Virus record (IMG/VR): IMGVR_UViG_3300034073_005389
Coordinates: 248,001 to 312,000 of that record
Length of the DNA stretch: 64,000 nucleotides
Strand: one strand, 5' to 3'
Shown here: positions 136 to 50,373 of the stretch, piece after piece
Position numbering within the stretch: the stretch's first letter is position 1
Layout of the letters: every line of letters begins with the position of its first letter
Position numbers and translations under genes: made by a program
Notes under the pieces: generated by a model
The model's database searches: none
What the model saw: only the letters and a program-made list of their open reading frames with translations
Told to the model about the DNA's origin: nothing

Positions 136-2354
136 GGCAGGGTTTAATTTTATTAAATAGAGGCTGCCCATATGGCTACCATTTTCATGAACTTTCTCCT
201 TCTAAAGCTAGATCGGCTACTTTTTTAGCTTCTTTCTTAAATCTTTCCATATCTTTACGAGATGGGGTAATCCTAGCTTCACTATTTTGAAAATGATAAT
301 ATTGAGTAGAAATATAAGAGCTATAAATAGCAAGCCACTTCATTTTTTGGTAGTCTTCGTATGTCATTGCTTAACCTCAAACCTTTTATCTAAAGCCGTC
401 CTAATCTTTCTCATCATTGCGATGTTATCTTCTGCATCGAATTGACCTTCCAAATGATCTGCACAATCAAGCAACAAATCTCTTAAACTTTCAATTTCGT
501 CTTCTTTAGTATTTAATTTTAAATAAAGATCTGTTTCCATCTCTCCCATGTTATGAGAGGTTTGCTTGGCAGCCTCAATAGCTTTATCTCTTTCAAATTT
601 TAACAACTCCATTTGCTGTTGATAAGTAGGTGGCGCATGAATGTCTTTGACGCCATTAGCAGCAATATTACAGTATTCTGTAAGCAAATTATTCTGCTCG
701 CATAATTCACGCAATAACTCAAACCTAACTGCATACCATTCTTCAGTATGCTGTCTAGAACGTGAATCGCTGATTAGCATATCAGCGTTGTTTCGCAGTT
801 CAATTAATAGAGAGATGTCTTCATTTTTCTGAAAGCCTTGACCTAAATCTTTGGGAATCCAAGGTCCAGGAGTAGCCGCCCTATTTAATCTTTCTAGATT
901 AAGAAGCTTTTCTTTATGAAGTTTCCAGCTTTGATTTCTTTTCTCAATCAAGCCCATTCTTTTAATATTAGACATAATTTACTCAATCTTTTTACTCATC
1001 TTATTTAATTTTTCTAATAAGATATCTCTTTCCTCTACTATAGCTCCGCCACAATTACATCCATCATAATATGTTGGGCAATCTTCTAAATTTTTATGGT
1101 TTCCATGATAACATTCTTGCCAGAAATCGATTTCTTCTTCTGCAGTCATACAATCTTGGCAACGCAATTTATTATCTAAATAACTATCACAAATCCTTGA
1201 AGGATGTGGGGTCATATTAAATCTCTTTTGCTCGAAGAAAACTCATAGATAATCAATCCATAATCTGTAAAATGCCAAATTTGTTTTAGTTAATTGAAAA
1301 GCCGACCAACCACCCCAAGTAACCCTAAATTCCCTGCCATAACAAAGATTATGTTGACTTTTGGAAAGGGCAAGATAGGGTTGATCATATCTATCTTTGC
1401 CACCGTGAAAACATAATCCTAGAAAAAAATAAGCAAAAACTTTAGGCTTCATCTAATTCAATCCTTGTCAAGTAAAGAGCAGAAGAAAAATAATTCATTA
1501 TATCTTTCTTTGATTTGTCTTTTAGATTGCCGTAGAAGGATGGAAATGTTGGATCGCTCATTAATTCAGAAATAAATTCTTTTAACCATTTGTTGTAAGT
1601 TAACTTACTGGAAAAATAGTGGCGCTTAACGTCACCATCATGCCACATATAGATATGTTTCTTACTCATTATTTTGGTTCCCAAATAATCTTAATTCTAC
1701 CATCGCGCTTACATTGGCTATAGCTCTTTAATGTGCCCCAATCTTCAGGCTCTTCGCATTCTGCGTGAGTAACAAATACATATTGCTGACCTTCTTGCGT
1801 TTTCTCAACGCTAGTAACAACATAAGTTGTCTTGTCCCGAATAAATACTGTACCAATTTTAGGCTCAACAAATCCACATCTTTCAGCATCTAATTCTAGA
1901 CCATGCAATGAATCATATAGTGATCCATAATCATATGATACTGGATAAGCTTTAGATGATACTTTAAACTCATTCATGCTGGGCTCAATATCAATTGTAC
2001 AGCCCTCTGGATAAAGCTCTCTAATCCATTTCTCAACAGCATCACAATTTTCTCTCATCTTCTCTTCCTTTTTTAAGAGAAGATCTTCTTGATCATTGAC
2101 ATCTGAATATTTATTGTATGTGTGCAATCTGTCAGCAAAAGATGCTTTCTTTAAGCGAATTACTTTGGTACGAAATCCAGAATTTGTAAATTCATTTGCC
2201 TTTTTCTTCGCATCTTCTTGATGAGAAAACCGAAATGCTTCTTTTTGGCTTTTAACAAAAATATATGTTGGTGCGAATTCTTTTTTGTAATAACAATTAT
2301 CAGATAATCTTTTAATAACCCATTTTTTCATAATGAAATCCTTTATCTAGCACC

Positions 2355-2382
2355 AAGTTAAATTTTAAAAATAGCCTGTCAA
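2355..2382 (-). promoter_or_regulatory. sigma70-like promoter TTGACA-N16-TAACTT
   Basis: TTGACA at 2377-2382 and TAnnnT at 2355-2360, upstream of ORF 1669..2331. Confidence 0.6.
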
Positions 2383-2409
2383 GAGGGCGTTAATTTATAA
2401 ATTAATACG

Positions 2410-2910
2410 TCACTTTAAACTTTTTTGCAAAGCTTTTTCTGCTTGAGCCAAACGCTTTTCTAAATTTTCTTTATGAATCTTTAATTGCTCTAAATCATAA
2501 ACTTGTTTTTGCGCAGCATAAACTTTCATCTTTTCTTTATATTCCGACATATCTTTCAAATATTGCGCATAGTTTTTCTCATAAGTCTCCATCTTAGACT
2601 TATATTGCTTCATCTGCTTATCATAATTTTCATTCTCTACATCCTCATACCAAGACAAATACATTTCCTTAATCTCTGCATCATCATCATATGCTGATGC
2701 CCTAACAGATAAACTAATTTCATTTTCTGGAACATTAATTTGGTTAGCGGCAGCAATAATGTCAGATAAAGAAAAAGACATTGTAGAGGCATAAGAACCG
2801 CCAAAAGAATATGTCCTCTCCACCCCTTTTAATGTTTTAGAAGGTGGATGTGGTTTATATGGAGAAGAAGGTAATCTAGGCTCTTTAGGTGCTTTCATTT
2901 TGTTAGCCAT
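2410..2910 (-). CDS. Hypothetical protein, Pro-rich N-terminus plus coiled coil; paralog of 10674..11153
   Basis: Shared KxPxxP start, YxDDD motif and ENxNYxKQxKxY coiled-coil segment. Confidence 0.65.
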   Translation of the reverse strand: MANKMKAPKEPRLPSSPYKPHPPSKTLKGVERTYSFGGSYASTMSFSLSDIIAAANQINVPENEISLSVRASAYDDDAEIKEMYLSWYEDVENENYDKQMKQYKSKMETYEKNYAQYLKDMSEYKEKMKVYAAQKQVYDLEQLKIHKENLEKRLAQAEKALQKSLK

Positions 2911-3345
2911 AACTTTCTATTTCTCTAATCCAGTTAATTGGATAAGTGTTTTGCTCAAAAATACAGTTAACGCAGTTTTATTTAATAAAGACATTTTCGT
3001 ATCTTTATTAACTTCATCCATAGAAGCTATAATAATCTCTTTAGCCTTTTGTATTCCCGTAGAATAACCATCTTTAACTCCTTGAGCATAATTAAGTAAT
3101 TCAGTTTTCTGAACTTTTTTCTTAACTTGTTTGGTAGTCATAGATTTATCTTGCGGAATAGGTCCTTGGCTGTTTAAGCGAGAACTATCTCCTGATACAA
3201 AAGAAGGTTGATTATCACAACGATTACAACCAAAAACATCGAAGGTTTTACCTTCAAGAAGAAAAGAAGTATGCTGGATTTGACCAACAAGGCATTTATT
3301 GCAATTCATATAATATAATAATGATTATGTAATAACTAACTGATT

Positions 3346-3621
3346 TGGCTCCGACTCCAGGATTCGGACCTGGGACCCGAGAGTTACAATCCTACTTCGG
3401 CTTTCGCCGCCCTCTAAATTGAGGTTCGTAGTCTGGACTATCCCATCACCCGTTCTGGGTGGATCCATTATAGTCTCTGCACCTTCCCTTATCGGGCTTG
3501 GCTCAGGATTGCCATATCTTGCGATGAAGGGTTCCCTGAATTTCGGATCTTTTACACCAATTATCCCTAACTGGCGCTGCCACTAACAGCTCTCTGCTAC
3601 TACCAACTGAGCTAAGTCGGA
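3346..3621 (-). tRNA. trnN: tRNA-Asn(GUU), intron-containing (exons 3586-3621 and 3346-3386), CCA encoded
   Basis: Joined exons give TCCGACT/AGTCGGA acceptor stem, G73-CCA, GAGAG/CTCTC anticodon stem and loop CTGT|TAA. Confidence 0.95.
3387..3585 (-). mobile_element. Group I intron (IC3-like, 199 nt) between tRNA positions 35 and 36
   Basis: Core elements AAUUCAGGGAAC, AAUCCUGAGC, GUGCAGAGACUA and GAUAGUCC; P1 GCUGU/GCAGC with U.G at the splice site; P3 GAUCC/GGAUC; P8 CACCC/GGGUG; GAAA-capped P9; terminal G. Confidence 0.93.
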
Positions 3622-3635
3622 AAAACTTACAACTA

Positions 3636-4298
3636 CTATATATTGTATTTCTCTTTTATTTTTTTAATAAAAGCATAGGTAGTGGATTTTGATCTATTAT
3701 ATCTTAATGCTATTTCTTTTACAGACATAGACTTTATTATGTCTATCATGATCTCATCACTATCCCACACAGATTTATATATCACCTCATCGCTACATTT
3801 TCTTGAACAAAAATTTCTTTTATTTTCAGCAGACTTATATACTTTAATTTCTTTTTCGCAATTAGAACATTTCTTGAAAACTGATCCTATATCAATCTTT
3901 TTTTCTGGAACAATTTTTCTTAAATTTTCATAAGTCTTTTCATTATTAATTTTATCTAAAATGTCATGAACTTCTCCATGACAATTTGAACATAATAATT
4001 CACACTTATCTAATTCTAATTTAATTTTTTCCCAAGATCTAATATTTGGATTAGAGATAGTAAAATCTTTTTGCTGCGGATCAATATGATGAAAAACTAA
4101 AGATCGTATTGATTTAGAATATCCGCATTTACTACATGCGCCGCCTTTATACTCTATAGCTTTTAATTTTAAAGCTCTACGACTTTCACTTATTCTCCAA
4201 CGTAAATAAATCTTTCTCTCTGAAGTTAATTTCCTTTTTGTCATAATAGTATGACAATTTATGTATACAGCTAAGCTATATCGTAAAATTTTTATCAC
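3636..4298 (-). CDS. Free-standing HNH endonuclease with zinc fingers (start may be 4244)
   Basis: CSKCGY...LVFHHIDP...CELLCSNCHGEVH HNH motif, a second CxxC...FCSRKC finger and a C-terminal HTH-like segment. Confidence 0.85.
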   Translation of the reverse strand: MIKILRYSLAVYINCHTIMTKRKLTSERKIYLRWRISESRRALKLKAIEYKGGACSKCGYSKSIRSLVFHHIDPQQKDFTISNPNIRSWEKIKLELDKCELLCSNCHGEVHDILDKINNEKTYENLRKIVPEKKIDIGSVFKKCSNCEKEIKVYKSAENKRNFCSRKCSDEVIYKSVWDSDEIMIDIIKSMSVKEIALRYNRSKSTTYAFIKKIKEKYNI

Positions 4299-6819
4299 AT
4301 TTTATGTGAAACATAATTTAAAAAGAAATTAGCTACATCTAATGAATTATTAAATAACTTATATCCCATTAATTGTTTTGGATTACCATGAGGATTAAAA
4401 TATTCTTCATATTCTACTTTCCACATATTTTCTTCAATACATTTAACAGTAATACAATTACTATAACTTATATCGATTTCTAATTGTATTATCTGCTGTA
4501 ATATTTCAGCAGTTAATTGTTCAGGTTTCATTTTTACTATGTAAAGTAATAAGTATGTTAAACCGCCAAAAGTCTAAGCTAATTTTATAATCATAATTAT
4601 TAAATTGTTTTGACATAATGGGAAAGATAGTAATACTTCCAATATTACCTAATCTATAAAATTTAGACTTAAACCGTTTCATAACTTTTCACTAGTATAA
4701 CGCTTGTGGCGTGAGTGTCAAGGGCTGCAATTATTTAGTAATGATTTGCTCAAAGACTCGACTAAAACCTCCAGAATTGTATTCCCAAGCTGAATGCGGT
4801 GCGTAATCTGGATCATTTCTATCTAACATATCAATAAAATAAAAGACTTCACCTAAATTACAATTTTTAGAAAAAATTTCTTGAGGATCTCCTTCACAAT
4901 CGCATACAAGAATAAAACCTTTAACTGGACCAGTATGAGTCCGAGTAATGTTTGTAGATGAATTGATTTTTTCACTCATATTAAGGCTTTTTCTTTCCAA
5001 AAAGGTTTTCCCATCTATTTACCCACCATTTCATTTGACCAATTGTTGAAGGAGGTACAGAACAAAAATCTCCATGATATGGAACATGCTGTCCTCCTTT
5101 TTTCTCCTTAGAAGCAATAGCTGCTGTAAAAATTTCACAAATAGCTTCTAACTCATCCCAATAGGTATCCCTTTGGCACCATGGGCATGAAGCTGCTTTT
5201 TCGGTTGCTCCATCCCATGGAATCCAATGAGCCTCATGGGTTTCACAATAACGAATCATAGATGCATTATAAGATTTTACTTCCGAATTACTCATCTGCC
5301 ATCTCCAGCATACCTTCAAGGAAATCCATCTCAATATCTCCTAGAACAACTGTGTACCTATAGGTATTATACAAGGGATTAACCTTACAGACTACACCAG
5401 TTTTAGTAGTCAAGCCTGAATGTCTCATAATATATGAGAGTGCCTGAATAATACGAACTTTATCACCTACGTTGAAGTTAGGTGGTGGACTGGATATTGA
5501 TTCACTCATATTTTACCTATCTATATCTTTTGTAAGTCCATCAAGCCATATTTCATCTTCACATCTTCTATATAATTCAAATTCGTAATATTTTTTAAAA
5601 TGTTCAGGATTATAAAAATTTTCTCTATTAGGAGCGGTAAAATGACGATTCAAAAAATCTAAATGTTTTTGATATTCTGTATCATTTTTTTGATTGTACC
5701 TATGACCAACAAATTTATAACCCAAAGATCGGCAAATAGTAATATCATCCCCAGAGTCATTAAAAATGAAAATATCTTTAGGAGAAGTATTTTTACAAAA
5801 TTCAAATAAATCTGGAGCTATTCTATTAACAACGTAATCTTTTACTTCTTGTTTTTCTTCATCAGAATACAAAGAAATATCTTTATCAAAGACTCTACTA
5901 TAGCATTCTGTCATAATATAATTAGTAAGATACTCCAAATCTTGGAAGCACTCCTTATCATCATTTAAAGCATGCCAACCACCTTTACCTAAATCATAGG
6001 CGGTTTTATTGTGACGATTAATAATGTAATATTCGATTCCCATATTGAAATACATGCCTCACATTACTAAATGTTTGTCACTTTTAAATTCGGTGATAAC
6101 TTCCCAAAGTAACCCAAACAAGCTGGCGTTATAATGCGCATACATTCCATAAAATAAGACCCAACATGGACCTGGAGAGATTATGCCAGGATCTTCAAGA
6201 TGAATAGAAAAGAAACGGTTGTTAAAATTATATTTCATATATTAATCTCGATCTGTATCTAATTGTAAGTAGGGAGGTTCAGATTGCAAACATTTGACAA
6301 TATATTCTCTTAATAATGGAGCGATTTCTAATTCATCGACTTCTACATCATTACAAAACTTATGCTCATCGCATCTATAAACAGATGTTCTGAATTCAAT
6401 GCCTTTATCTTCTTCAGAATAAAGCTCATAACGAGTAGCTAAAGATGAGCAAGATATTCTGTCACATTTGGGTAGTGACATAATTATCTTTTTAGCTAAA
6501 GCATATTTGGTATGAATATCAATCATAATTATCCTTTTTATAAGGCAAAGTTTTTACTTTTAAAAATGTAAAAACTTTTTACTCCCTCATAATCATGAGT
6601 ACCGATTCTAAATCCTATTTTATGTAAATGATCTGCCCAAATATAATGAACAGATTTTTCTGATTGTAGGCAATCATAGTTATAACCATCCATATAAATC
6701 CAGCAACCATCTTTTTCAGGCTGCCTGAAACCTTTATTTGGTCCAGATTTGATGACTGGTTGAGAACTTACTGATTTTTTTGTTTTGTCCTTACCTAAGG
6801 TTTCAATCATAAAAGTCAA
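4295..6819 (-). other. Array of small hypothetical ORFs
   Basis: Co-oriented coupled ORFs; includes an unlisted ~59-aa ORF at about 6058-6238. Confidence 0.7.
4694..4721 (-). promoter_or_regulatory. sigma70-like promoter TTGACA-N16-TATACT, likely driving ORF78-HNH-tRNA-Asn
   Basis: TTGACA at 4716-4721 and TATACT at 4694-4699. Confidence 0.75.
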
Positions 6820-15163: not shown

Positions 15164-17095
15164 TCAACTATCTCGCCACAAATTAGCCGCTGCAAAAGCT
15201 AAAATCTCTTCTGCCGAATCTGGATTATATCCAATATTCATTAACTGCTCTGTCATATCTGAGTATTTCTTCTGCTGCTCAGAATCTCTTGTCTTGCTCT
15301 TTGTCACAATTCTAGCAATTGACTTAATGCCAGTAATTAAATATGACTCAATAGCAGACTTCAAAGGCTCATAACTAGTATACTTAATTGTATCTCCTCG
15401 TCTCATTCTAGAGAACATATAGGCAGTTACATCACTTCTAAAGCCATCTTTAGAAGAACCAGTGATACCAATCTGCTCCTCAATAGACTTCATAAAAGCT
15501 TCATCTGGAGTACGCTCTTCTTTTGTTACTCTGTCTTTTAATTTAACACGAGTTACATATGCCTCTGCATGATCCATGTAATTCTCAAAGATAGATTGAG
15601 CCTGCTCCTCATAAGCTGTAATAAATGCCTTGGCAATTTCACTTTCTAGTATCTTTAGATACTCTTCACGAATTGTCTTTTGTAGTAACTCTAAACAATG
15701 TGCTTTAAATTGCTCATCAGTAATCTGCTCTTTTACCATTCTGGTTAAAGAATTAATTACTGAAACAGGAGTAATCATATTCTTTTCTGAATTAGTTAAC
15801 GCATGATCTAATGATTTAGTGATAAATCTAGTAGAAATACCATCTAAACCCTCATGCTTAGCTTCTTCTCGTAAATCCTTAATATCTACCTTCTTAACTC
15901 TGCCCTTTTCAATGATTTCTTCACCATTGTAAATCTTCATCTTAGTCAATAAATCACATTTGCCAGATGTCTTTAATCTGCTCATTACAGAGAACATAGA
16001 AGCAACCTTCAAAGTATGAGGTGCGATATGTGCAGTAAAGTCTGATTTACCTAACATCTTTTCGTAAATCTTAATTTCTTGATCTAACTCAAGACAATAA
16101 GGAACAGCTACTTTTACAATACGGTCTAAAATAGCCTCATTAGTATGTTCAGACTGGAATCTATTCCATTCTGCTTCATTACAGTGAGCTAAAATAACTC
16201 CATCAAAATGAAGCATGTCTGATTTGCCAGGAGAAGGAACTCGTTTTTCTTGAGTAGCAGTAATAATAGTATGTAAGAATTCAATTTCATTCTTAAATAC
16301 TTCTACTAATTCTACGATACCACGATTGCCTACGTTGAAAGCGCCGGTTAAGGATAATGCTCGTGGATCATCTTCTGAGTATTTATCTAGTTTAGAAATA
16401 TCTACCGAGCCAATTAGCACAGAAACATCTTGTGAGTTAGCATCCATAGGGGGAACTGCTGCTACGCCACGTCTAGCCCTTTGAGAGAATGATGTTTCTT
16501 CTACTTCAAAGTTTTCATACTTACCGTCTAATTCATTCATGAGCTTATGACGGGCTACAGGAGAAATATCACCTTCAATTTTAACATTAAGTGTTTTCTC
16601 AAATGAGTCTCTTAAAGATCGAGGAATGAGTTGTAGTGGTTCGCCACGGTGAGGATCGCCCTTTAGGTGGTAGTATTTCTTACCTTCTAGCGCCTTTTTA
16701 ATATGTTCGGTGAGGGCTGACTTGCCTGCGCCTACTGGACCCATTAATAACAATACCTGGCGGGATTCTTCGCCACGCTGAGCGGCAGATGAAAGGAAAG
16801 ACATTACTTTGTTAATAACGTTTTCCATACCAAAGAATTCGTTTTCAAAATATTTATAGAGTTTTACATTTTCTCCATCAAATATTTTATGCTTACGGAT
16901 ATCGGAATCTGGCATAGTTTCTACGCCACGTTCTACAATAGCTTCGTATAATCTTTTATGTGATGATTTAACAATAGATGGATCTTGCTCGACTAAATCA
17001 ATGTAATCCATCAAGTTGCCAGAAAATTTCTTATTTTGACTGGCAGATTCTCTTGCCGATTGAATTTGTTTTAATAGTTGTTCTTTGGTACTCAT
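15164..17095 (-). CDS. prkA: PrkA/YeaG family AAA+ serine kinase
   Basis: LLLMGPVGAGKS Walker A; GAFNVGNRGIVELVEVFK; HCNEAEW...EAILDR; YCL family motifs; 643 aa. Confidence 0.95.
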   Translation of the reverse strand: MSTKEQLLKQIQSARESASQNKKFSGNLMDYIDLVEQDPSIVKSSHKRLYEAIVERGVETMPDSDIRKHKIFDGENVKLYKYFENEFFGMENVINKVMSFLSSAAQRGEESRQVLLLMGPVGAGKSALTEHIKKALEGKKYYHLKGDPHRGEPLQLIPRSLRDSFEKTLNVKIEGDISPVARHKLMNELDGKYENFEVEETSFSQRARRGVAAVPPMDANSQDVSVLIGSVDISKLDKYSEDDPRALSLTGAFNVGNRGIVELVEVFKNEIEFLHTIITATQEKRVPSPGKSDMLHFDGVILAHCNEAEWNRFQSEHTNEAILDRIVKVAVPYCLELDQEIKIYEKMLGKSDFTAHIAPHTLKVASMFSVMSRLKTSGKCDLLTKMKIYNGEEIIEKGRVKKVDIKDLREEAKHEGLDGISTRFITKSLDHALTNSEKNMITPVSVINSLTRMVKEQITDEQFKAHCLELLQKTIREEYLKILESEIAKAFITAYEEQAQSIFENYMDHAEAYVTRVKLKDRVTKEERTPDEAFMKSIEEQIGITGSSKDGFRSDVTAYMFSRMRRGDTIKYTSYEPLKSAIESYLITGIKSIARIVTKSKTRDSEQQKKYSDMTEQLMNIGYNPDSAEEILAFAAANLWRDS

Positions 17096-17115
17096 CTACT
17101 CTTTCCTTGTTAGAA

Positions 17116-17313
17116 TTACACTCTTCTAAAGCTTCCTTTAAACTTAGCCGGGGTTTCTTGCTCTTCTTGTTCTTCTAATTGTTTATTACTAATCACATCT
17201 TGTAAATATAAGACAATTTCTTTTGCTTTATCTTCTTCAGAAACAGGTTGTCTTAAAATAGACAAAATTGTATGATAATAATTATTTTTATCTATAATAT
17301 TTATTTTAGTCAA
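17116..17313 (-). CDS. Small hypothetical protein within the cassette
   Basis: 65 aa, overlapping the spoVR stop. Confidence 0.55.
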   Translation of the reverse strand: MTKINIIDKNNYYHTILSILRQPVSEEDKAKEIVLYLQDVISNKQLEEQEEQETPAKFKGSFRRV

Positions 17314-18631
17314 TGGATGTTACCTCATCATTTACTCTAGCCAATAATCTAACAGAGTTTCCCCACAAAGTTTTAATATGATGTACTACTGTAGTGGCAT
17401 ATGTTACTTCTAAATCTCTTCCATCATGTTCATGATATAAAACTAATTCGTTATTTCTTCTAACTTCTTCTACATAAACTACTGGAATAGAACCACCGCC
17501 AACTGATTTGGCTAATTCATTTTTAACAACTTCCCAACCATCCTCATCAGATATATCCTCGACAACTAATCCATTACCTCTTTTTTTGACGTAAGTAAAC
17601 AAATTTAATTCAGCACATAGTTCTGCGTCAAGATATTGTCTAATAAATGATGCATCATGGCATGCTTCTCTAGCAATCAGACATTCTTCCCAACCATATT
17701 TTTTCTCTATATGACGATATAAATGAAAACCTAAATGATATGGATTGATAGATCCAATATGCGGTCTAATAACTTGATTATGAGACTTAATAATAGGAAG
17801 ATGATATTCTGAAGGTAAATCTAAATCATGACAGATTTTATAATGCATTGCGCAAGAAAATCCTTCATTTGAGACTTTAGTTTGAATTTGTGGCCAGAAA
17901 TATTGACCTTCATCTCTAATAATATCAATGATATCTTTTTTCCAGCTAGGTAATTTAGCGTTCTCAGAAATAAAACCTAACAAATCATAATCTGGCTCTA
18001 AAGGAATTTTTTCTAATTCTCTATTTATTCTAAGCTGACGATTTGTATCATTTCTTTCTTTGGCTTCTTTTAATTCTTGAAGTTTTTCTTCTTTAATTTC
18101 TTCTTGAGTTCTACGACGTAAACCATATTTAGTAGTCTGAAATTGAACGGCATGACATGCATCAATTACTTTTTCTACTTCTTCGATTCCAATATTAGTA
18201 TCTTCTACATAAGATTGAATCCTCTTTTTAGCTGCACGGAATCTTTGAATAACTGTTTCAGGTCTAGTATCTTTAAACATTCTGTTATTTTTAAAAAAAT
18301 CAGAATGCCCAACGCAATGAGCCATAATAAGAATCTGTAAATATAATGGATTCTCTCTCATTAAATATGCAATTGACGGATGGCTATTGATGATAAGTTC
18401 GTAAGGTAAACCTTCCATACCAAGATTATACATCTGGTGTGTTCGCTCAAAAGCTTTGCCAAGAGACCAATGATTATACATAGACGGCATGCCATGATGA
18501 GCCATAGCCCCTATCATTTCATAATAATCTATTGTCTCATACTCGATAGGATAAGGGTCCAATTTGTACTTAGGATATATTTCATTAATTTTCTCATCCC
18601 ATTTTTCTAGATCTGATAATGTATAATCCAT
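17306..18631 (-). CDS. spoVR: SpoVR/YcgB family protein
   Basis: GMPSMYNHWSLGK, YELIINSHPSIAYL, AHCVGHSDFFKNN, QTKVSNEG and INPYHLG. Confidence 0.95.
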   Translation of the reverse strand: MDYTLSDLEKWDEKINEIYPKYKLDPYPIEYETIDYYEMIGAMAHHGMPSMYNHWSLGKAFERTHQMYNLGMEGLPYELIINSHPSIAYLMRENPLYLQILIMAHCVGHSDFFKNNRMFKDTRPETVIQRFRAAKKRIQSYVEDTNIGIEEVEKVIDACHAVQFQTTKYGLRRRTQEEIKEEKLQELKEAKERNDTNRQLRINRELEKIPLEPDYDLLGFISENAKLPSWKKDIIDIIRDEGQYFWPQIQTKVSNEGFSCAMHYKICHDLDLPSEYHLPIIKSHNQVIRPHIGSINPYHLGFHLYRHIEKKYGWEECLIAREACHDASFIRQYLDAELCAELNLFTYVKKRGNGLVVEDISDEDGWEVVKNELAKSVGGGSIPVVYVEEVRRNNELVLYHEHDGRDLEVTYATTVVHHIKTLWGNSVRLLARVNDEVTSID

Positions 18632-18633
18632 AC

Positions 18634-19812
18634 TTACACCTCGGAGCTAACTCCATTTAATATATTCTTAAAAGCAACCCAAACATCTTCTTTTCTTAAG
18701 ATATAAGCTGTATGCAATTTTTTATCTCTTAAGGGTTGCAAAACATCATACAGTGTAGCGGGTTGCTCATAAGCACTGCTAGTAACATCTTTATCTGGAT
18801 TAATTTCGCAATATCCAAACAATTGACATACTTCTTTTAATTCAGATACTTTATCGGCAAATATTTTATTATCAAAACCAAAGTTATCTCCATCGCTACA
18901 TTGAAAAATATAAATATTCCAAGCAGAAGGATGATATCTTTTATCAATAATTTCTTCCACTAATTTAACACCAGAAGAAGCTACTGTTCCACCGTATGTA
19001 CTTTGAGTAAAGAAGTCTTTTTCGTTTACTTCTCTTGCCTCTGCATCATGGGTAACGAAAACAATATCTAATGTTTCGTATTTGCTACGAAGAAACTGAT
19101 ACATCAAAAAGCAAAAGCTTCTAGCTAAGAACTTTTTGTCAGTGCTCATGGAGCCAGAAACATCCATTAAGAAAAAGACAACAGCATTAGTAGAAGGTTC
19201 CTCTTTCTTTTTATAATGCCTGAATTTTAAATCATCTTCATGGAATGGAAAAGTTTCGCCTTCTTCGGCAGTTTCTGGATCGAAACCAGAAGCTTTCATT
19301 CTTTTAATTCTAGCAATAGCAGATTTTTTCTTATCTAATCTAGGAATAATGCCTTCAGAACGATAACCACTACGCTTTAGCTTTTCTTGAGAAATATTGG
19401 ATAGTTGTTTTCGTTGCAACTCTGGAAGATTTAAGTCCTCAAATAAATATTGGGATAATTCATCTAGTGAAATTTCTACTTCGTAAAATTCTTCACCTTT
19501 TTCATTTCCGGCTTTATTACCAGGGGCAGGTTGATCATCATCTGATTGCCCGATTTTTTGACCTTTTTGAAGATCTTTGCCAGGAGCAGACCCTACTTGT
19601 TTAGAAGAGTTAGCACCATAGACAAACTTATATTCTTTAATACCTCTGACAGGTATTTTGAATTTCTTTTTTCCGTTTTCACCAATGATAGATTCTTCAG
19701 CTACAATGTTATGAATTCCGTCTTTAATAGCCTTTTCTATCTTCTGTTTATGACGCCTTCTATCAGAAGCGGAGCGATCTGCTGTGGTTTTATGTTCTCG
19801 GAAAATAGACAT
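18634..19812 (-). CDS. yeaH: YeaH/YhbH (UPF0229) vWA-domain protein
   Basis: DRSASDRRRH start; FFLMDVSGSM MIDAS motif; GGTVASS; WNIYIFQCSDGDN. Start set at the Met of MSIFREH. Confidence 0.93.
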   Translation of the reverse strand: MSIFREHKTTADRSASDRRRHKQKIEKAIKDGIHNIVAEESIIGENGKKKFKIPVRGIKEYKFVYGANSSKQVGSAPGKDLQKGQKIGQSDDDQPAPGNKAGNEKGEEFYEVEISLDELSQYLFEDLNLPELQRKQLSNISQEKLKRSGYRSEGIIPRLDKKKSAIARIKRMKASGFDPETAEEGETFPFHEDDLKFRHYKKKEEPSTNAVVFFLMDVSGSMSTDKKFLARSFCFLMYQFLRSKYETLDIVFVTHDAEAREVNEKDFFTQSTYGGTVASSGVKLVEEIIDKRYHPSAWNIYIFQCSDGDNFGFDNKIFADKVSELKEVCQLFGYCEINPDKDVTSSAYEQPATLYDVLQPLRDKKLHTAYILRKEDVWVAFKNILNGVSSEV

Positions 19813-19918
19813 TTTTAAAAAATACCTGGTTATTAGCATTAATATGCTTTTAATTTTAATTATCGCACGATATCGGCGTATAATGATATATTATATATCA
19901 AAGAAAAGAGAAATTAAA

Positions 19919-20074
19919 ATGAAAAACAAATCTATCTTAATAAGACTTTCAGATGATGAAATGAAAGAAATAAATGATTTATTTAAAAAAGAAATAGTCA
20001 ATAATGATTTAATTAGCAGGAGTGAATTTGTAAGAAGACTAATTAAATTGGGCATGGTGCAATATGAAAAATAA
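19919..20074 (+). CDS. Ribbon-helix-helix (CopG-like) DNA-binding protein
   Basis: KSILIRLSDDEMKEI...SRSEFVRRLI pattern; coupled to the downstream endonuclease. Confidence 0.6.
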   Translation: MKNKSILIRLSDDEMKEINDLFKKEIVNNDLISRSEFVRRLIKLGMVQYEK

Positions 20075-21554
20075 ATATGACACTAATTCCTTCATAAGGG
20101 TTGCGGCTGAAATTCATAAAAATAAATATGATTATTCTAAATCAGAATATACTACTATTTCTAATAAAATCACTATTATTTGCCCTAATCATGGAGAATT
20201 TAAACAAGAGGCAAAGTACCATTTAAAGGGTGGTGGATGCTATCAGTGCGCTAAAGAGTCTCGTAAAACCCCAAAAACAAGTATTGAAACTTTCATTGAA
20301 AAAGCAAGAAAAATATTTGGTAATAATTATTGTTATGATGAAGTTAATTATATTAATACTCTTACTAAAGTAAAAATAATTTGTAAAGAACACGGCTCTT
20401 TTGAACAAAAGCCAGTAAGTCATCTATCTGGAAGTGGATGCAGACTATGTTTTCATAACAGAAAAACATCGTCTAACGATCAATTCATAGATAAAGCAAT
20501 CAAAATTCATGGAAATAAATATAGTTATTTGCTATCTGAATATAAAAACAATAAATCAAATATAAAGATATTATGCCCTATTCATGGAGAGTTTGTACAA
20601 CAAGCCGCAGCTCATTTAAGAGGAGCTAATTGTCCAAGTTGCTCAAGGAAAACAGAAAAAATAGCAGGAGAATTTTTTAATAAAGTTAATCAGCTATATA
20701 AAAATAAATATGATTACTCATTATCAAAATATAAAAATAATAGGGAAAAAATAATTATTATTTGCCCAATTCATGGACAATTTACTCGTCAACCATGTAA
20801 ACATCTGGTAGGATACGGATGTTCCAGGTGTGGAAAATATGCAAAATTATCAAATAATTATTTTATTGAAAGAGCAGTTGAGCTACATGGCGATAAGTAT
20901 GATTACTCAAATATTAATATTACTAGTAATAAATCAATTGCGAGAATTATTTGCAAAATTCATGGCGAATTTAATCAGGAAGCAGGAAGCCACTTAAAAG
21001 GCAGCGGCTGTTCTGGATGTAGTGGTACTAAAAAATTAGACACCAATATTTTCATTAAAAGATCTAAAAAGATTCATGGAGATAAATATGATTATTCTTT
21101 ATCTAAATATGTTGGAATCAATAAAAAAGTTAAAATTATTTGTAAAGAACATGGAGAATTTTTACAAATAGCAAATAATCATATGCTTGGTGGAGGGTGT
21201 CCTAAATGTGGAGTAAGCTGCTCTAAAGATGAAATATCATGGATTAAATCATTTAATAATTTAAATATTATTTCTGGATACGACAAATTAATTATTAATA
21301 ATAAAAAATTAAAACCTGACGGATTTGATCCAACCACCAACACTGTTTATGAGTTTTATGGAGATTATTGGCATGGTAATCCAAAAAAATTTAAATCAGA
21401 AGATATCAACCCTTCTAATAATATTAGTTTTGGAGAACTTTATAAAAAAACTATAAAAAGAGCTAATATGATAAAAATGGCTGGTTACAATCTTGTTTCA
21501 ATTTGGGAATACGATTATAGAAAATCTCTATGTAAAACCAAAGATATTAAATAA
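20064..21554 (+). CDS. Free-standing endonuclease: six DUF723-like zinc repeats plus an EDxHD/Vsr-like nuclease domain
   Basis: Six KYDYS...IICxxHGxF...HLxGxGCxxC repeats; C-terminal PDGFD...VYEFYGDYWHG. Confidence 0.85.
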   Translation: MKNKYDTNSFIRVAAEIHKNKYDYSKSEYTTISNKITIICPNHGEFKQEAKYHLKGGGCYQCAKESRKTPKTSIETFIEKARKIFGNNYCYDEVNYINTLTKVKIICKEHGSFEQKPVSHLSGSGCRLCFHNRKTSSNDQFIDKAIKIHGNKYSYLLSEYKNNKSNIKILCPIHGEFVQQAAAHLRGANCPSCSRKTEKIAGEFFNKVNQLYKNKYDYSLSKYKNNREKIIIICPIHGQFTRQPCKHLVGYGCSRCGKYAKLSNNYFIERAVELHGDKYDYSNINITSNKSIARIICKIHGEFNQEAGSHLKGSGCSGCSGTKKLDTNIFIKRSKKIHGDKYDYSLSKYVGINKKVKIICKEHGEFLQIANNHMLGGGCPKCGVSCSKDEISWIKSFNNLNIISGYDKLIINNKKLKPDGFDPTTNTVYEFYGDYWHGNPKKFKSEDINPSNNISFGELYKKTIKRANMIKMAGYNLVSIWEYDYRKSLCKTKDIK

Positions 21555-49216: not shown

Positions 49217-50080
49217 ATGCACATATATCTGCATATATGTATGTCTGAAATTAAATGTAAATTTTGCGAAAAAATATTATTATCTAATATGTCTAGATCA
49301 ATACATCAATTAAGATGTAATCTTAATCCAGAATTTGACCCAAACAGATTTACAACACCATCTAGAAGAGGAAAGTATAAGTCAAACTCTCCATCTAAAA
49401 GCACATTAAAAAAACAAGAAAGTAAAACCCGACTAAAAAAACAATTAGATACAAAAAAATTTGTATGCCAATATTGTTGGCATGACATTACGACTTCAAC
49501 AAAACTGCCGCCTAAATTTTATTTTAAAGGCTTAAGGCTACATGAATCTATGTGCGGTAAAAATCCGCATGGGAAATCAGTAATGTATCCAACTAAACAT
49601 TCAGATAAAACTATCGAAAAATTAAAAGAGTCAGGTAAAAAAAGAGTTTGGACTCAGGAACAAAAAATAAAACTTAGTGAAAGTATGAAAAATGCTGTTA
49701 AAAAGCATCCGGAATCATACACAAATTCTAATAGAGGAAGGGTTAAACAAATAATATTTGATAATATCAAATTTCATGGTAAATGGGAAGTTGCTTTCTA
49801 TAAATGGTCAAAAGAAAACAATATTGAGATAAAAAAAAATATTGAAGGATTTAACTATTATTGGAGAGGTAATAGAACATATTTTCCTGATTTTTATCTT
49901 CCAAAATTAGAATTATTTATTGAAATAAAAGGATATGAAACATATCGAGACCAAGCAAAATGGTCTGCATTTCCTAAGAAACTTATAGTAATTAGAAAAG
50001 AACAAATTTTACAAATTAATAAAGGAATATTTCCTGGAATAGAAAGCATTCCTTTAACTAGTCCGACAAACAGGACTTGA
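49217..50080 (+). CDS. Free-standing PD-(D/E)xK endonuclease with zinc fingers and NUMOD3-like segment (start may be 49241)
   Basis: KWEVAF...YFPDFYL...FIEIKG; CxxC...HxxxC fingers; KHSDKTIEKL. Confidence 0.8.
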   Translation: MHIYLHICMSEIKCKFCEKILLSNMSRSIHQLRCNLNPEFDPNRFTTPSRRGKYKSNSPSKSTLKKQESKTRLKKQLDTKKFVCQYCWHDITTSTKLPPKFYFKGLRLHESMCGKNPHGKSVMYPTKHSDKTIEKLKESGKKRVWTQEQKIKLSESMKNAVKKHPESYTNSNRGRVKQIIFDNIKFHGKWEVAFYKWSKENNIEIKKNIEGFNYYWRGNRTYFPDFYLPKLELFIEIKGYETYRDQAKWSAFPKKLIVIRKEQILQINKGIFPGIESIPLTSPTNRT

Positions 50081-50373
50081 ACCTGTAACCACGCGATTAT
50101 GCTTACCACTACGATTTTCATCGCCTTTTTAAAGTTTGTGGTCTGGACTATACCTTCCCTCTCGGGTCTAACGTCTAGTCTCTACACCTTCTCAAATTTA
50201 TTGAGCTTGGCTCGGGATTAGCATATAAATTTCTTTACTTAGCTTTCCCCGAATTTGTCAGATTCTACCAAGATGTTTCACTTGGCAACCCACGATAGTA
50301 TATCATGAACATATATTGTTTTTAGATATACAATCTTCGAGTCGCATGCTCTAACCAATTGAGCTATTGTCGG
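50062..50373 (-). tRNA. trnI: tRNA-Ile2(CAU), intron-containing (exons 50340-50373 and 50062-50101), CCA not encoded
   Basis: Joined exons give CCGACAA/TTGTCGG, A73 and GCGACT|CATAATCGC, the anticodon arm I recall from E. coli ileX; lacks the initiator features; adjacent to tilS. Confidence 0.88.
50102..50339 (-). mobile_element. Group I intron (IC3-like, 238 nt) between tRNA positions 33 and 34
   Basis: AAAUUCGGGGAA, AAUCCCGAGC, GUGUAGAGACUA and UAUAGUCC; P1 GCGACU/GGUUGC; P3 UCUGAC/GUUAGA; P8 CCC-GAGA-GGG; terminal G. Confidence 0.92.

Follow-up and report, generated by a model that had tools for sequence, protein, structure and literature searches.

In a 361-kb freshwater phage, an HNH nuclease gene that behaves as a mobile element lies 14 nt upstream of a tRNA-Asn gene (trnN) split by an ORF-less, predicted self-splicing group I intron. 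All 17 evaluable intron-bearing trnN loci of this intron lineage, including this one, abut a free-standing nuclease gene, compared with 2 of 45 uninterrupted control trnN, which suggests that the intron depends on a neighbouring nuclease to spread. The analysed stretch (the window, 64,000 nt) comprises bases 248001–312000 of the 361,490-bp virus record IMGVR_UViG_3300034073_005389; it has 33% G+C and was rated 97% complete by CheckV. An earlier note had described the HNH ORF, the 14-nt spacing, the ORF-less intron and a probable shared promoter, and had inferred collaborative homing in which the HNH cuts intron-less trnN alleles. The observation was confirmed by our reading of the sequence. 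The interpretation was supported only in part: comparison favours a partnership between nuclease and intron, whereas cleavage of intron-less trnN at the intron insertion site remains an inference.

The phage is a jumbo phage with no close relative in INPHARED or IMG/VR. A megablast search with positions 3000..5000 returned nothing, its large kinase-like protein reached only about 33% identity, orf130 had no relatives, and a homologous-protein search with orf166 returned nothing from a collection that lacks the exact sequence. Its DNA was found in subsurface, freshwater and lake metagenomes from eight studies, and no RNA run contained the locus.

The HNH ORF and the split tRNA-Asn gene

All features described here lie on the minus strand, in the order promoter-like site, orf53, orf78, HNH ORF, 14-nt spacer, split tRNA gene, orf130 and orf166. 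The promoter-like site (4721..4694; TTGACA, 16 nt, TATACT) matched the sigma-70 consensus at 11 of 12 positions, but such sites were no commoner in the region than in shuffled sequence, so it is a consensus match only. No convincing terminator was found between it and the tRNA, making co-transcription of the HNH ORF and the tRNA plausible rather than shown. The HNH ORF (HNH-1) is open from a GTG at 4298 but most likely starts at ATG 4244 (3636..4244, 202 aa); gene callers on public contigs give both 202 and 220 aa. Its TAG stop codon is at 3638..3636 and tRNA position 1 is at 3621, leaving the spacer 3635..3622, as the earlier note had it.

HNH-1 matched PHROG phrog_2255 (E 1.7e-27), whereas Pfam PF01844 scored 19.0 bits (E 0.0016), just under its 21.4-bit cut-off; this is a near miss of a short, divergent model and is outweighed by the PHROG and residue evidence. 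The HNH domain (3930..4196, aa 17–105) carries a Cys4 zinc site and the HH...N...H motif. It contains FHH...NCHGEVH and both CxxC pairs, and C28, C31, H43, H44, C76, C79 and H80 (alignment numbering) are invariant in 17 relatives. Identity to HNH proteins of jumbo phages was 58–62%. The domain is followed by a CxxC...CSxKC zinc-ribbon module (3792..3869, aa 126–151), which gave a weak YacG-like match, is conserved in full-length relatives and forms a two-strand hairpin in the model, and by a predicted C-terminal helix-turn-helix DNA-binding module (3645..3767, aa ~160–200), which gave weak HTH matches and is modelled as a helical bundle (pLDDT 80–88). These three modules, shared by the full-length relatives, appeared in an AlphaFold model of the whole protein (pLDDT 77). 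A Foldseek search with this model gave only weak rows, headed by T4 Endo VII and the Cap5, ZRANB3 and Cas9 HNH domains, with E > 0.1, together with YacG and response-regulator HTH domains. PDB sequence searches gave nothing useful. The Pfam score and the lack of a significant PDB match could suggest that the ORF is an inactive remnant, or not a nuclease, lying beside the tRNA by coincidence. We consider this very unlikely, as the frame is open and 98–99% conserved across samples, all family-invariant catalytic and zinc residues are kept, the PHROG match is strong, and the comparative statistics below argue against coincidence.

The tRNA gene (3621..3346) was missed by default ARAGORN and by an Rfam scan of the whole window, but was found by ARAGORN with introns allowed. 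Rfam RF00028 scored 52.7 bits (gathering score 50, E 1.1e-12) when only 3250..3700 was searched. ARAGORN named the gene Thr(tgt), with a split that leaves U as the last intron base. The only split with U before the 5′ splice site and G at the intron end gives the loop CUGU|UAA, which is Asn with anticodon GUU, and the acceptor end is of the Asn type (UCC...GGA stem, U1-A72, G73). The gene thus consists of a 36-nt 5′ exon (3586..3621) ending in GCUGU, a 199-nt ORF-less intron (3387..3585) between U35 and U36, and a 3′ exon (3346..3386) that begins with UAA and contains the discriminator G at 3349 and an encoded CCA at 3348..3346. P1 is formed by pairing of GCUGU with GCAGC (3580..3576), with a U.G pair at the splice site, and the terminal G is at 3387. 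This is the only trnN of the phage, so the intron must splice for the tRNA to be made.

A scan for the general IC3 core motif recovered 116 or more viral stretches, nearly all outside tRNA genes and none with an HNH of this family nearby; this was too broad to be useful. A trnN-specific pattern built from the P1 pairing and the core recovered 22 viral stretches, of which 18 are trnN genes with a homologous intron at exactly the same site, 192–227 nt long and always ending in G. An alignment of 12 homologues gave a consensus fold of 57 pairs, 28 of them kept through changes on both sides (P2, P3, P4, P5, P8, P9 and the anticodon stem). The P1 U.G pair and the terminal G were present in 12 of 12, and none of the 12 shows an ORF. 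This indicates that the intron is under selection as a ribozyme. The distance from the guide sequence to the core motif is 69 nt in the window and in L252 and L220 (our labels for compared loci and contigs begin with L). The L220 intron scored 76.6 bits with Rfam; Rfam in E-value mode missed the introns of L252 and L291, which are plain on reading the sequence. An ARAGORN ‘tRNA-Tyr’ in L083/L084 is a ghost made of the 3′ part of the intron plus the 3′ exon. Standard tRNA finders miss or misname these genes, calling them Thr, Asp or nothing.

Allelic variation at the locus and genomic setting of the HNH family

Contigs from four metagenomes were compared with positions 1500..6500. Three hold the HNH and the intron. 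One freshwater run (X6) holds two contigs: one carries tRNA, intron and HNH (3330..4333), and the other (depth 13.4) runs from orf166 to 2922, touches only the 22 nt at 3622..3643, and skips 3644..4288, with 14 other letters in its place, before resuming at 4289. The skipped 645-nt segment holds the HNH leader and all but the last codons of the ORF. The 22-nt island, which holds the HNH stop codon, is conserved in both alleles directly upstream of the tRNA. A public contig with a variant of orf78 (L092) shows the second allele in full. It matches the window at 4626..4289 (95.9% identity; left flank with orf78, 4295..4531) and at 2922..2397 (97.7%; right flank with orf166, 2410..2910), and carries the island at its positions 352..373 with one mismatch. 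Its middle contains an uninterrupted 83-nt tRNA with anticodon GUU and a long variable arm, and a different HNH (HNH-2; 213 aa, 35% identical to HNH-1, with the same architecture). HNH-1 thus shows presence/absence polymorphism between closely similar flanks, although the only HNH-1-free allele carries another tRNA and another HNH. The segment downstream of the tRNA (2923..3345, including orf130, 2917..3309) is replaced in other haplotypes: similarity to the window ends at 3348 in L088, 3205 in L086/L087 and 2922 in L092. The three HNH-1 haplotypes differ downstream of the tRNA, yet all keep the intron-bearing trnN.

Relatives of the HNH domain (55–64% identity) lie inside tRNA arrays, mostly on the same strand as the tRNAs. 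Of 98 loci from IMG/VR, 87 hold tRNAs, 73 have a tRNA within 100 nt of the ORF, and in 40 it is trnN. trnN makes up 42 of 106 adjacent tRNAs, compared with 73 of 619 of all tRNAs in those loci. Both orders occur, with the HNH a few nt upstream of trnN or trnN 40–70 nt upstream of the HNH. The same association was found in the cultured phages Yersinia fHe-Yen9-04, Xanthomonas XbC2, the KVP40-like Vibrio VH1_2019 and the Klebsiella RCIP0023 group.

trnN copies flank the HNH on both sides in L220, L231, L237, L266 and L285, an arrangement that could fit a domesticated nuclease. Like SegB in T6, HNH-1 would then mainly serve the phage by promoting duplication or amplification of tRNA genes, or exclusion of competitors’ tRNA regions, for example against tRNA-targeting defences, with spread of itself or the intron secondary. 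SegB drives segmental amplification of a tRNA gene to escape Septu, and its homologues are tRNA-linked (PMC13096335). We regard this reading as improbable here, because the window has a single trnN and no duplication at this locus, the HNH is dispensable in nature and is replaced by another HNH, and nothing links it to a defence system.

Nuclease genes beside intron-bearing tRNAs

The co-occurrence of nuclease and intron in related phages, which had been proposed beforehand as a test, was borne out from the intron’s side. Twelve intron-bearing trnN loci from at least three unrelated phage groups have an HNH-family ORF directly downstream on the same strand; they comprise one mosaic phage group, L316, and the GC-rich 436-kb phage L220/L299, in which an uninterrupted trnN follows the HNH. 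Four further loci, of the window’s own tRNA lineage (80–82% identical over tRNA plus intron), have no HNH. In these, a 222–223-aa ORF (a remnant in one locus) has its stop overlapping the 5′ end of the tRNA and is homologous to window ORF 49217..50080. The window itself, with HNH-1 upstream, brings the total to 17 of 17 (13 HNH family, 4 of the second family); two other intron-bearing loci were too short to judge. Among 45 uninterrupted viral trnN with 1-kb flanks, two had an HNH-family ORF within 400 nt and none had the other nuclease. Fisher p was 2e-13 by locus, although many of the 17 loci belong to one mosaic phage group, and about 1e-6 when five or six phage lineages were counted. On a poorly resolved tree (84 columns, quick search only), the HNH genes beside intron-bearing tRNAs fell in at least two and probably five or more places; we use it only to state that they are not one clade.

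ORF 49217..50080 (287 aa) is annotated as an endonuclease in T4-like and Vi1-like phages; a PDB sequence search with it gave nothing useful. In the window it abuts the second intron-bearing tRNA (50061..50373). Both intron-bearing tRNAs of this genome therefore touch a member of these two nuclease families, and none of the 11 uninterrupted tRNAs does. The Rak2/121Q-like jumbo phages provide an independent parallel: six genomes with a group I intron in tRNA(CAU) all have an HNH within 300 nt, and eleven genomes without an HNH have the uninterrupted tRNA, whereas RaK2 has an HNH next to an uninterrupted tRNA-Met and no intron. The intron-bearing tRNA(CAU) genes are unannotated in the two published Klebsiella and Escherichia records opened (RCIP0023 and Turkey5). 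The HNH upstream of trnN in RaK2/Turkey5 was considered as a homologue of HNH-1 and rejected, as BLASTP gave no significant match (best E 0.016, over 31 residues outside the HNH domain) and its best PHROG family (phrog_14913) is not among the matches of HNH-1.

No intron-less version of the same trnN was found among 260 trnN (best 81–86% identity), with the exons compared separately and a 20-nt anticodon-arm pattern as the only query joining them, in collections that may lack close kin of the window. A metagenome scan with the 3′ exon gave 0 hits, but it did not return known JGI contigs of this phage either, so the blank says little. About 40 family members sit next to uninterrupted trnN with canonical anticodon arms, in which we found no sequence signature of nuclease resistance; the family therefore neither needs an intron nor cuts every trnN anticodon loop. 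Because the closest relatives of this tRNA and intron carry the other nuclease, HNH-1 appears to be a late arrival beside an older tRNA-and-intron unit rather than its original partner, and partners are exchangeable.

These observations also fit two independent selfish elements at one hot spot. HNH-1 would home to the flank or body of trnN on its own, for example by recognizing the T-loop, as SegB does instead of the anticodon loop (PMC2330249), and the intron would be a passenger that entered trnN separately, for example by reverse splicing or with a former partner, gaining nothing specific beyond hitch-hiking. The HNH-1 insertion (3644..4288) is a separate event from the tRNA replacement, most family members flank uninterrupted trnN, and adjacent elements are linked whatever their function. 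We consider this alternative unlikely, though it is the strongest rival, since the asymmetry is hard to explain by chance linkage: every evaluable intron-bearing trnN has a nuclease neighbour, from two unrelated families and several HNH sub-lineages, while only about 4% of uninterrupted trnN do, and the second intron-bearing tRNA of the window repeats the pattern.

Interpretation and comparison with known systems

We propose that HNH-1 is a free-standing homing endonuclease gene of an HNH family that lives in phage tRNA arrays and is tied to trnN, and that it was inserted upstream of a trnN already carrying the intron. In this view the two now travel as one cassette: during mixed infection the nuclease would cut the trnN region of a genome lacking the cassette, and repair from the donor would copy the nuclease gene and, by co-conversion, the adjacent intron-bearing trnN. 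The intron would supply a phenotypically silent interruption of, or close to, the target in the donor’s only trnN, and the nuclease would supply the DNA break. The analysis establishes an intact nuclease gene, a structurally conserved ribozyme, a natural presence/absence allele pair, family-wide linkage to trnN, and a nuclease gene abutting every evaluable intron-bearing trnN of this lineage. Nuclease activity and its site specificity, biased inheritance, self-splicing and co-conversion as the transfer route are inferred. We rate the partnership as likely; that the cut lies at or near the intron insertion site, with the intron-bearing allele resistant, is no more than a tentative possibility. 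The nuclease does not need the intron, but the intron was not found without a nuclease among the evaluable loci. This pattern would be given by an ORF-less intron that depends on a neighbour’s DNA break to spread or persist, and also by an intron kept as a shield for a trnN that a resident nuclease would otherwise cut; both are halves of the collaborative-homing model (PMC3984707, PMC2790892).

A broader reading is possible but doubtful: ORF-less group I introns in phage tRNA genes may persist only as partners of free-standing nucleases. trnN would then be a hub where an HNH family and, interchangeably, a second nuclease family cut uninterrupted trnN, and the intron would be the immunity device that lets a phage keep its only trnN next to such a nuclease. 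If true, this would be a widespread, natural, many-times-replicated collaborative-homing system at a tRNA gene, showing stages on the road to composite mobile introns. Collaborative homing is the leading idea for how introns and nuclease genes first came together, but it rests on very few phage cases, all in protein-coding genes. The present locus adds a tRNA-gene case, a natural allele pair coexisting in one water sample, and about five independent phage lineages in which the same intron sits beside different nucleases, a set suited to asking whether the nuclease’s target equals the intron site, whether the intron confers immunity and how partners are swapped.

The intron resembles the bacterial IC3-type tRNA introns (cyanobacterial and plastid tRNA-Leu(UAA), Azoarcus tRNA-Ile(CAU), and tRNA-fMet with I-Ssp6803I; PMC3984707; Williams 2020, doi 10.1101/2020.01.27.920355) in being a compact ~200-nt group I ribozyme in the anticodon loop, with the core sequence CAATCCTGAGCCAAGCC...GGTGCAGAGACTA, a U.G pair at the 5′ splice site and a terminal G. 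Here the host is a phage and the tRNA is Asn(GUU), split between positions 35 and 36; we found no description of this in the literature searched, which did not cover the table of 21 types in Williams 2020. The HNH endonucleases F-TflI, II and IV of the phage T5 tRNA region are site-specific nucleases encoded among phage tRNA genes, and no intron partner is known there.

T4 SegB, cited as a precedent in the earlier note, is likewise a free-standing homing endonuclease gene inside a phage tRNA array. Its preferred cut does lie in a tRNA-Asn gene of the recipient (PMC2330249), and it drags neighbouring tRNA genes along. SegB is, however, a GIY-YIG enzyme, its homologues show no tRNA isotype preference (PMC13096335) whereas this HNH family is strongly biased to trnN, and no intron is involved in T4. 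T4 MobE is a free-standing HNH nuclease that mobilizes a neighbouring intron unable to move itself, the nrdB intron with the defunct I-TevIII (PMC2790892); MobE lies in another gene’s neighbourhood and rescues an intron with a dead internal ORF. In the collaborative homing of F-CphI with the psbA intron of cyanophage S-PM2 (PMC6083498) and of the T7-like DNA-polymerase intron system (reviewed in PMC3984707), the target was mapped to the intron insertion site, the host genes encode proteins and the nucleases are Endo VII-motif enzymes. In the present case the host gene is a tRNA, the nuclease is an HNH with a zinc ribbon and a predicted HTH, and the pairing recurs in many phages with two nuclease families.

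Second intron-bearing tRNA gene and its endonuclease neighbour

A second intron-bearing tRNA gene was found at 50061..50373 on the minus strand of the window, with a match to the Rfam group I model of 52.1 bits. Although ARAGORN called it Leu(caa), its short variable arm and the rule of a U before the 5' splice site and a terminal G in the intron point to the anticodon CAU, split between positions 33 and 34. A convergent ORF of 287 aa on the plus strand (49217..50080), assigned to an endonuclease family (phrog_15137), overlaps the 3' end of this tRNA gene by 20 nt. In the full virus record (G000), several tRNA genes outside the window are repeated a few kb apart at 321276..343475, namely four tRNA-Leu(taa), two tRNA-Arg(tct), and one uninterrupted tRNA-Leu(caa). 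A second tRNA-Leu(caa) call, at 298061..298373 of the record, is the intron-bearing tRNA that we read as tRNA(CAU).

The filters used by Rfam miss the AT-rich introns of window 3250..3700, of L252 (a further intron-bearing locus), and of L083/L084 (public contigs) in long inputs, and ARAGORN with introns allowed mislabels such introns as Thr, Asp, or Arg. It can also call a ghost tRNA-Tyr from the 3' part of the intron plus the 3' exon (L083/L084, 1867..1944).

tRNA genes and introns associated with the HNH family

The tRNA called “tRNA-Asn” in the alternative allele, represented by the public contig L092 (374..456), is 83 nt long with a long variable arm and a Tyr-like D arm. It is thus a class II body carrying the anticodon GUU, which is unusual for Asn, and 54 of 85 aligned columns were identical to the phage's own tRNA-Tyr.

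In five loci of the HNH family (L231, L237, L266, L285, and L220), trnN copies flank the HNH gene on both sides, which could be a footprint of homing next to a resident trnN or of nuclease-driven duplication. In another viral locus (L291, 2774..3054, minus strand), a tRNA-Arg(UCU) gene with a homologous group I intron of ~206 nt, split between positions 33 and 34, lies 9 nt from an HNH-family ORF on the opposite strand. Between the otherwise unrelated phage contigs L316 (769..1035) and L303 (260..524), DNA similarity (90.6%) was confined to the tRNA-Asn-plus-intron unit and a short piece of the HNH gene, suggesting recent horizontal transfer of the cassette.

Other window ORFs and group I introns in published jumbo phages

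A 496-aa ORF at 20064..21554 on the plus strand of the window showed strong matches to the endonuclease/HNH PHROGs 681 and 559, and is another probable mobile nuclease gene, lying on the strand opposite to its neighbours. Three adjacent large ORFs at 15164..19839 on the minus strand matched PrkA/YeaG-type “serine kinase” proteins of Thermus phages, with a sporulation-protein-like PHROG among the hits. This auxiliary module is shared with a few huge phages.

Published jumbo phages also carry a group I intron in a tRNA(CAU) gene (L001, ~2167..2477; L095, 1804..2109). The gene is unannotated in the two records opened, RCIP0023 and Turkey5, and the Turkey5 gene was misnamed Arg(acg) by ARAGORN. 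The phages with this intron are Klebsiella RCIP0023 (Rfam 104 bits), KP13-7, Muenster, and phiKp_21, and Escherichia Turkey5 and TH47.
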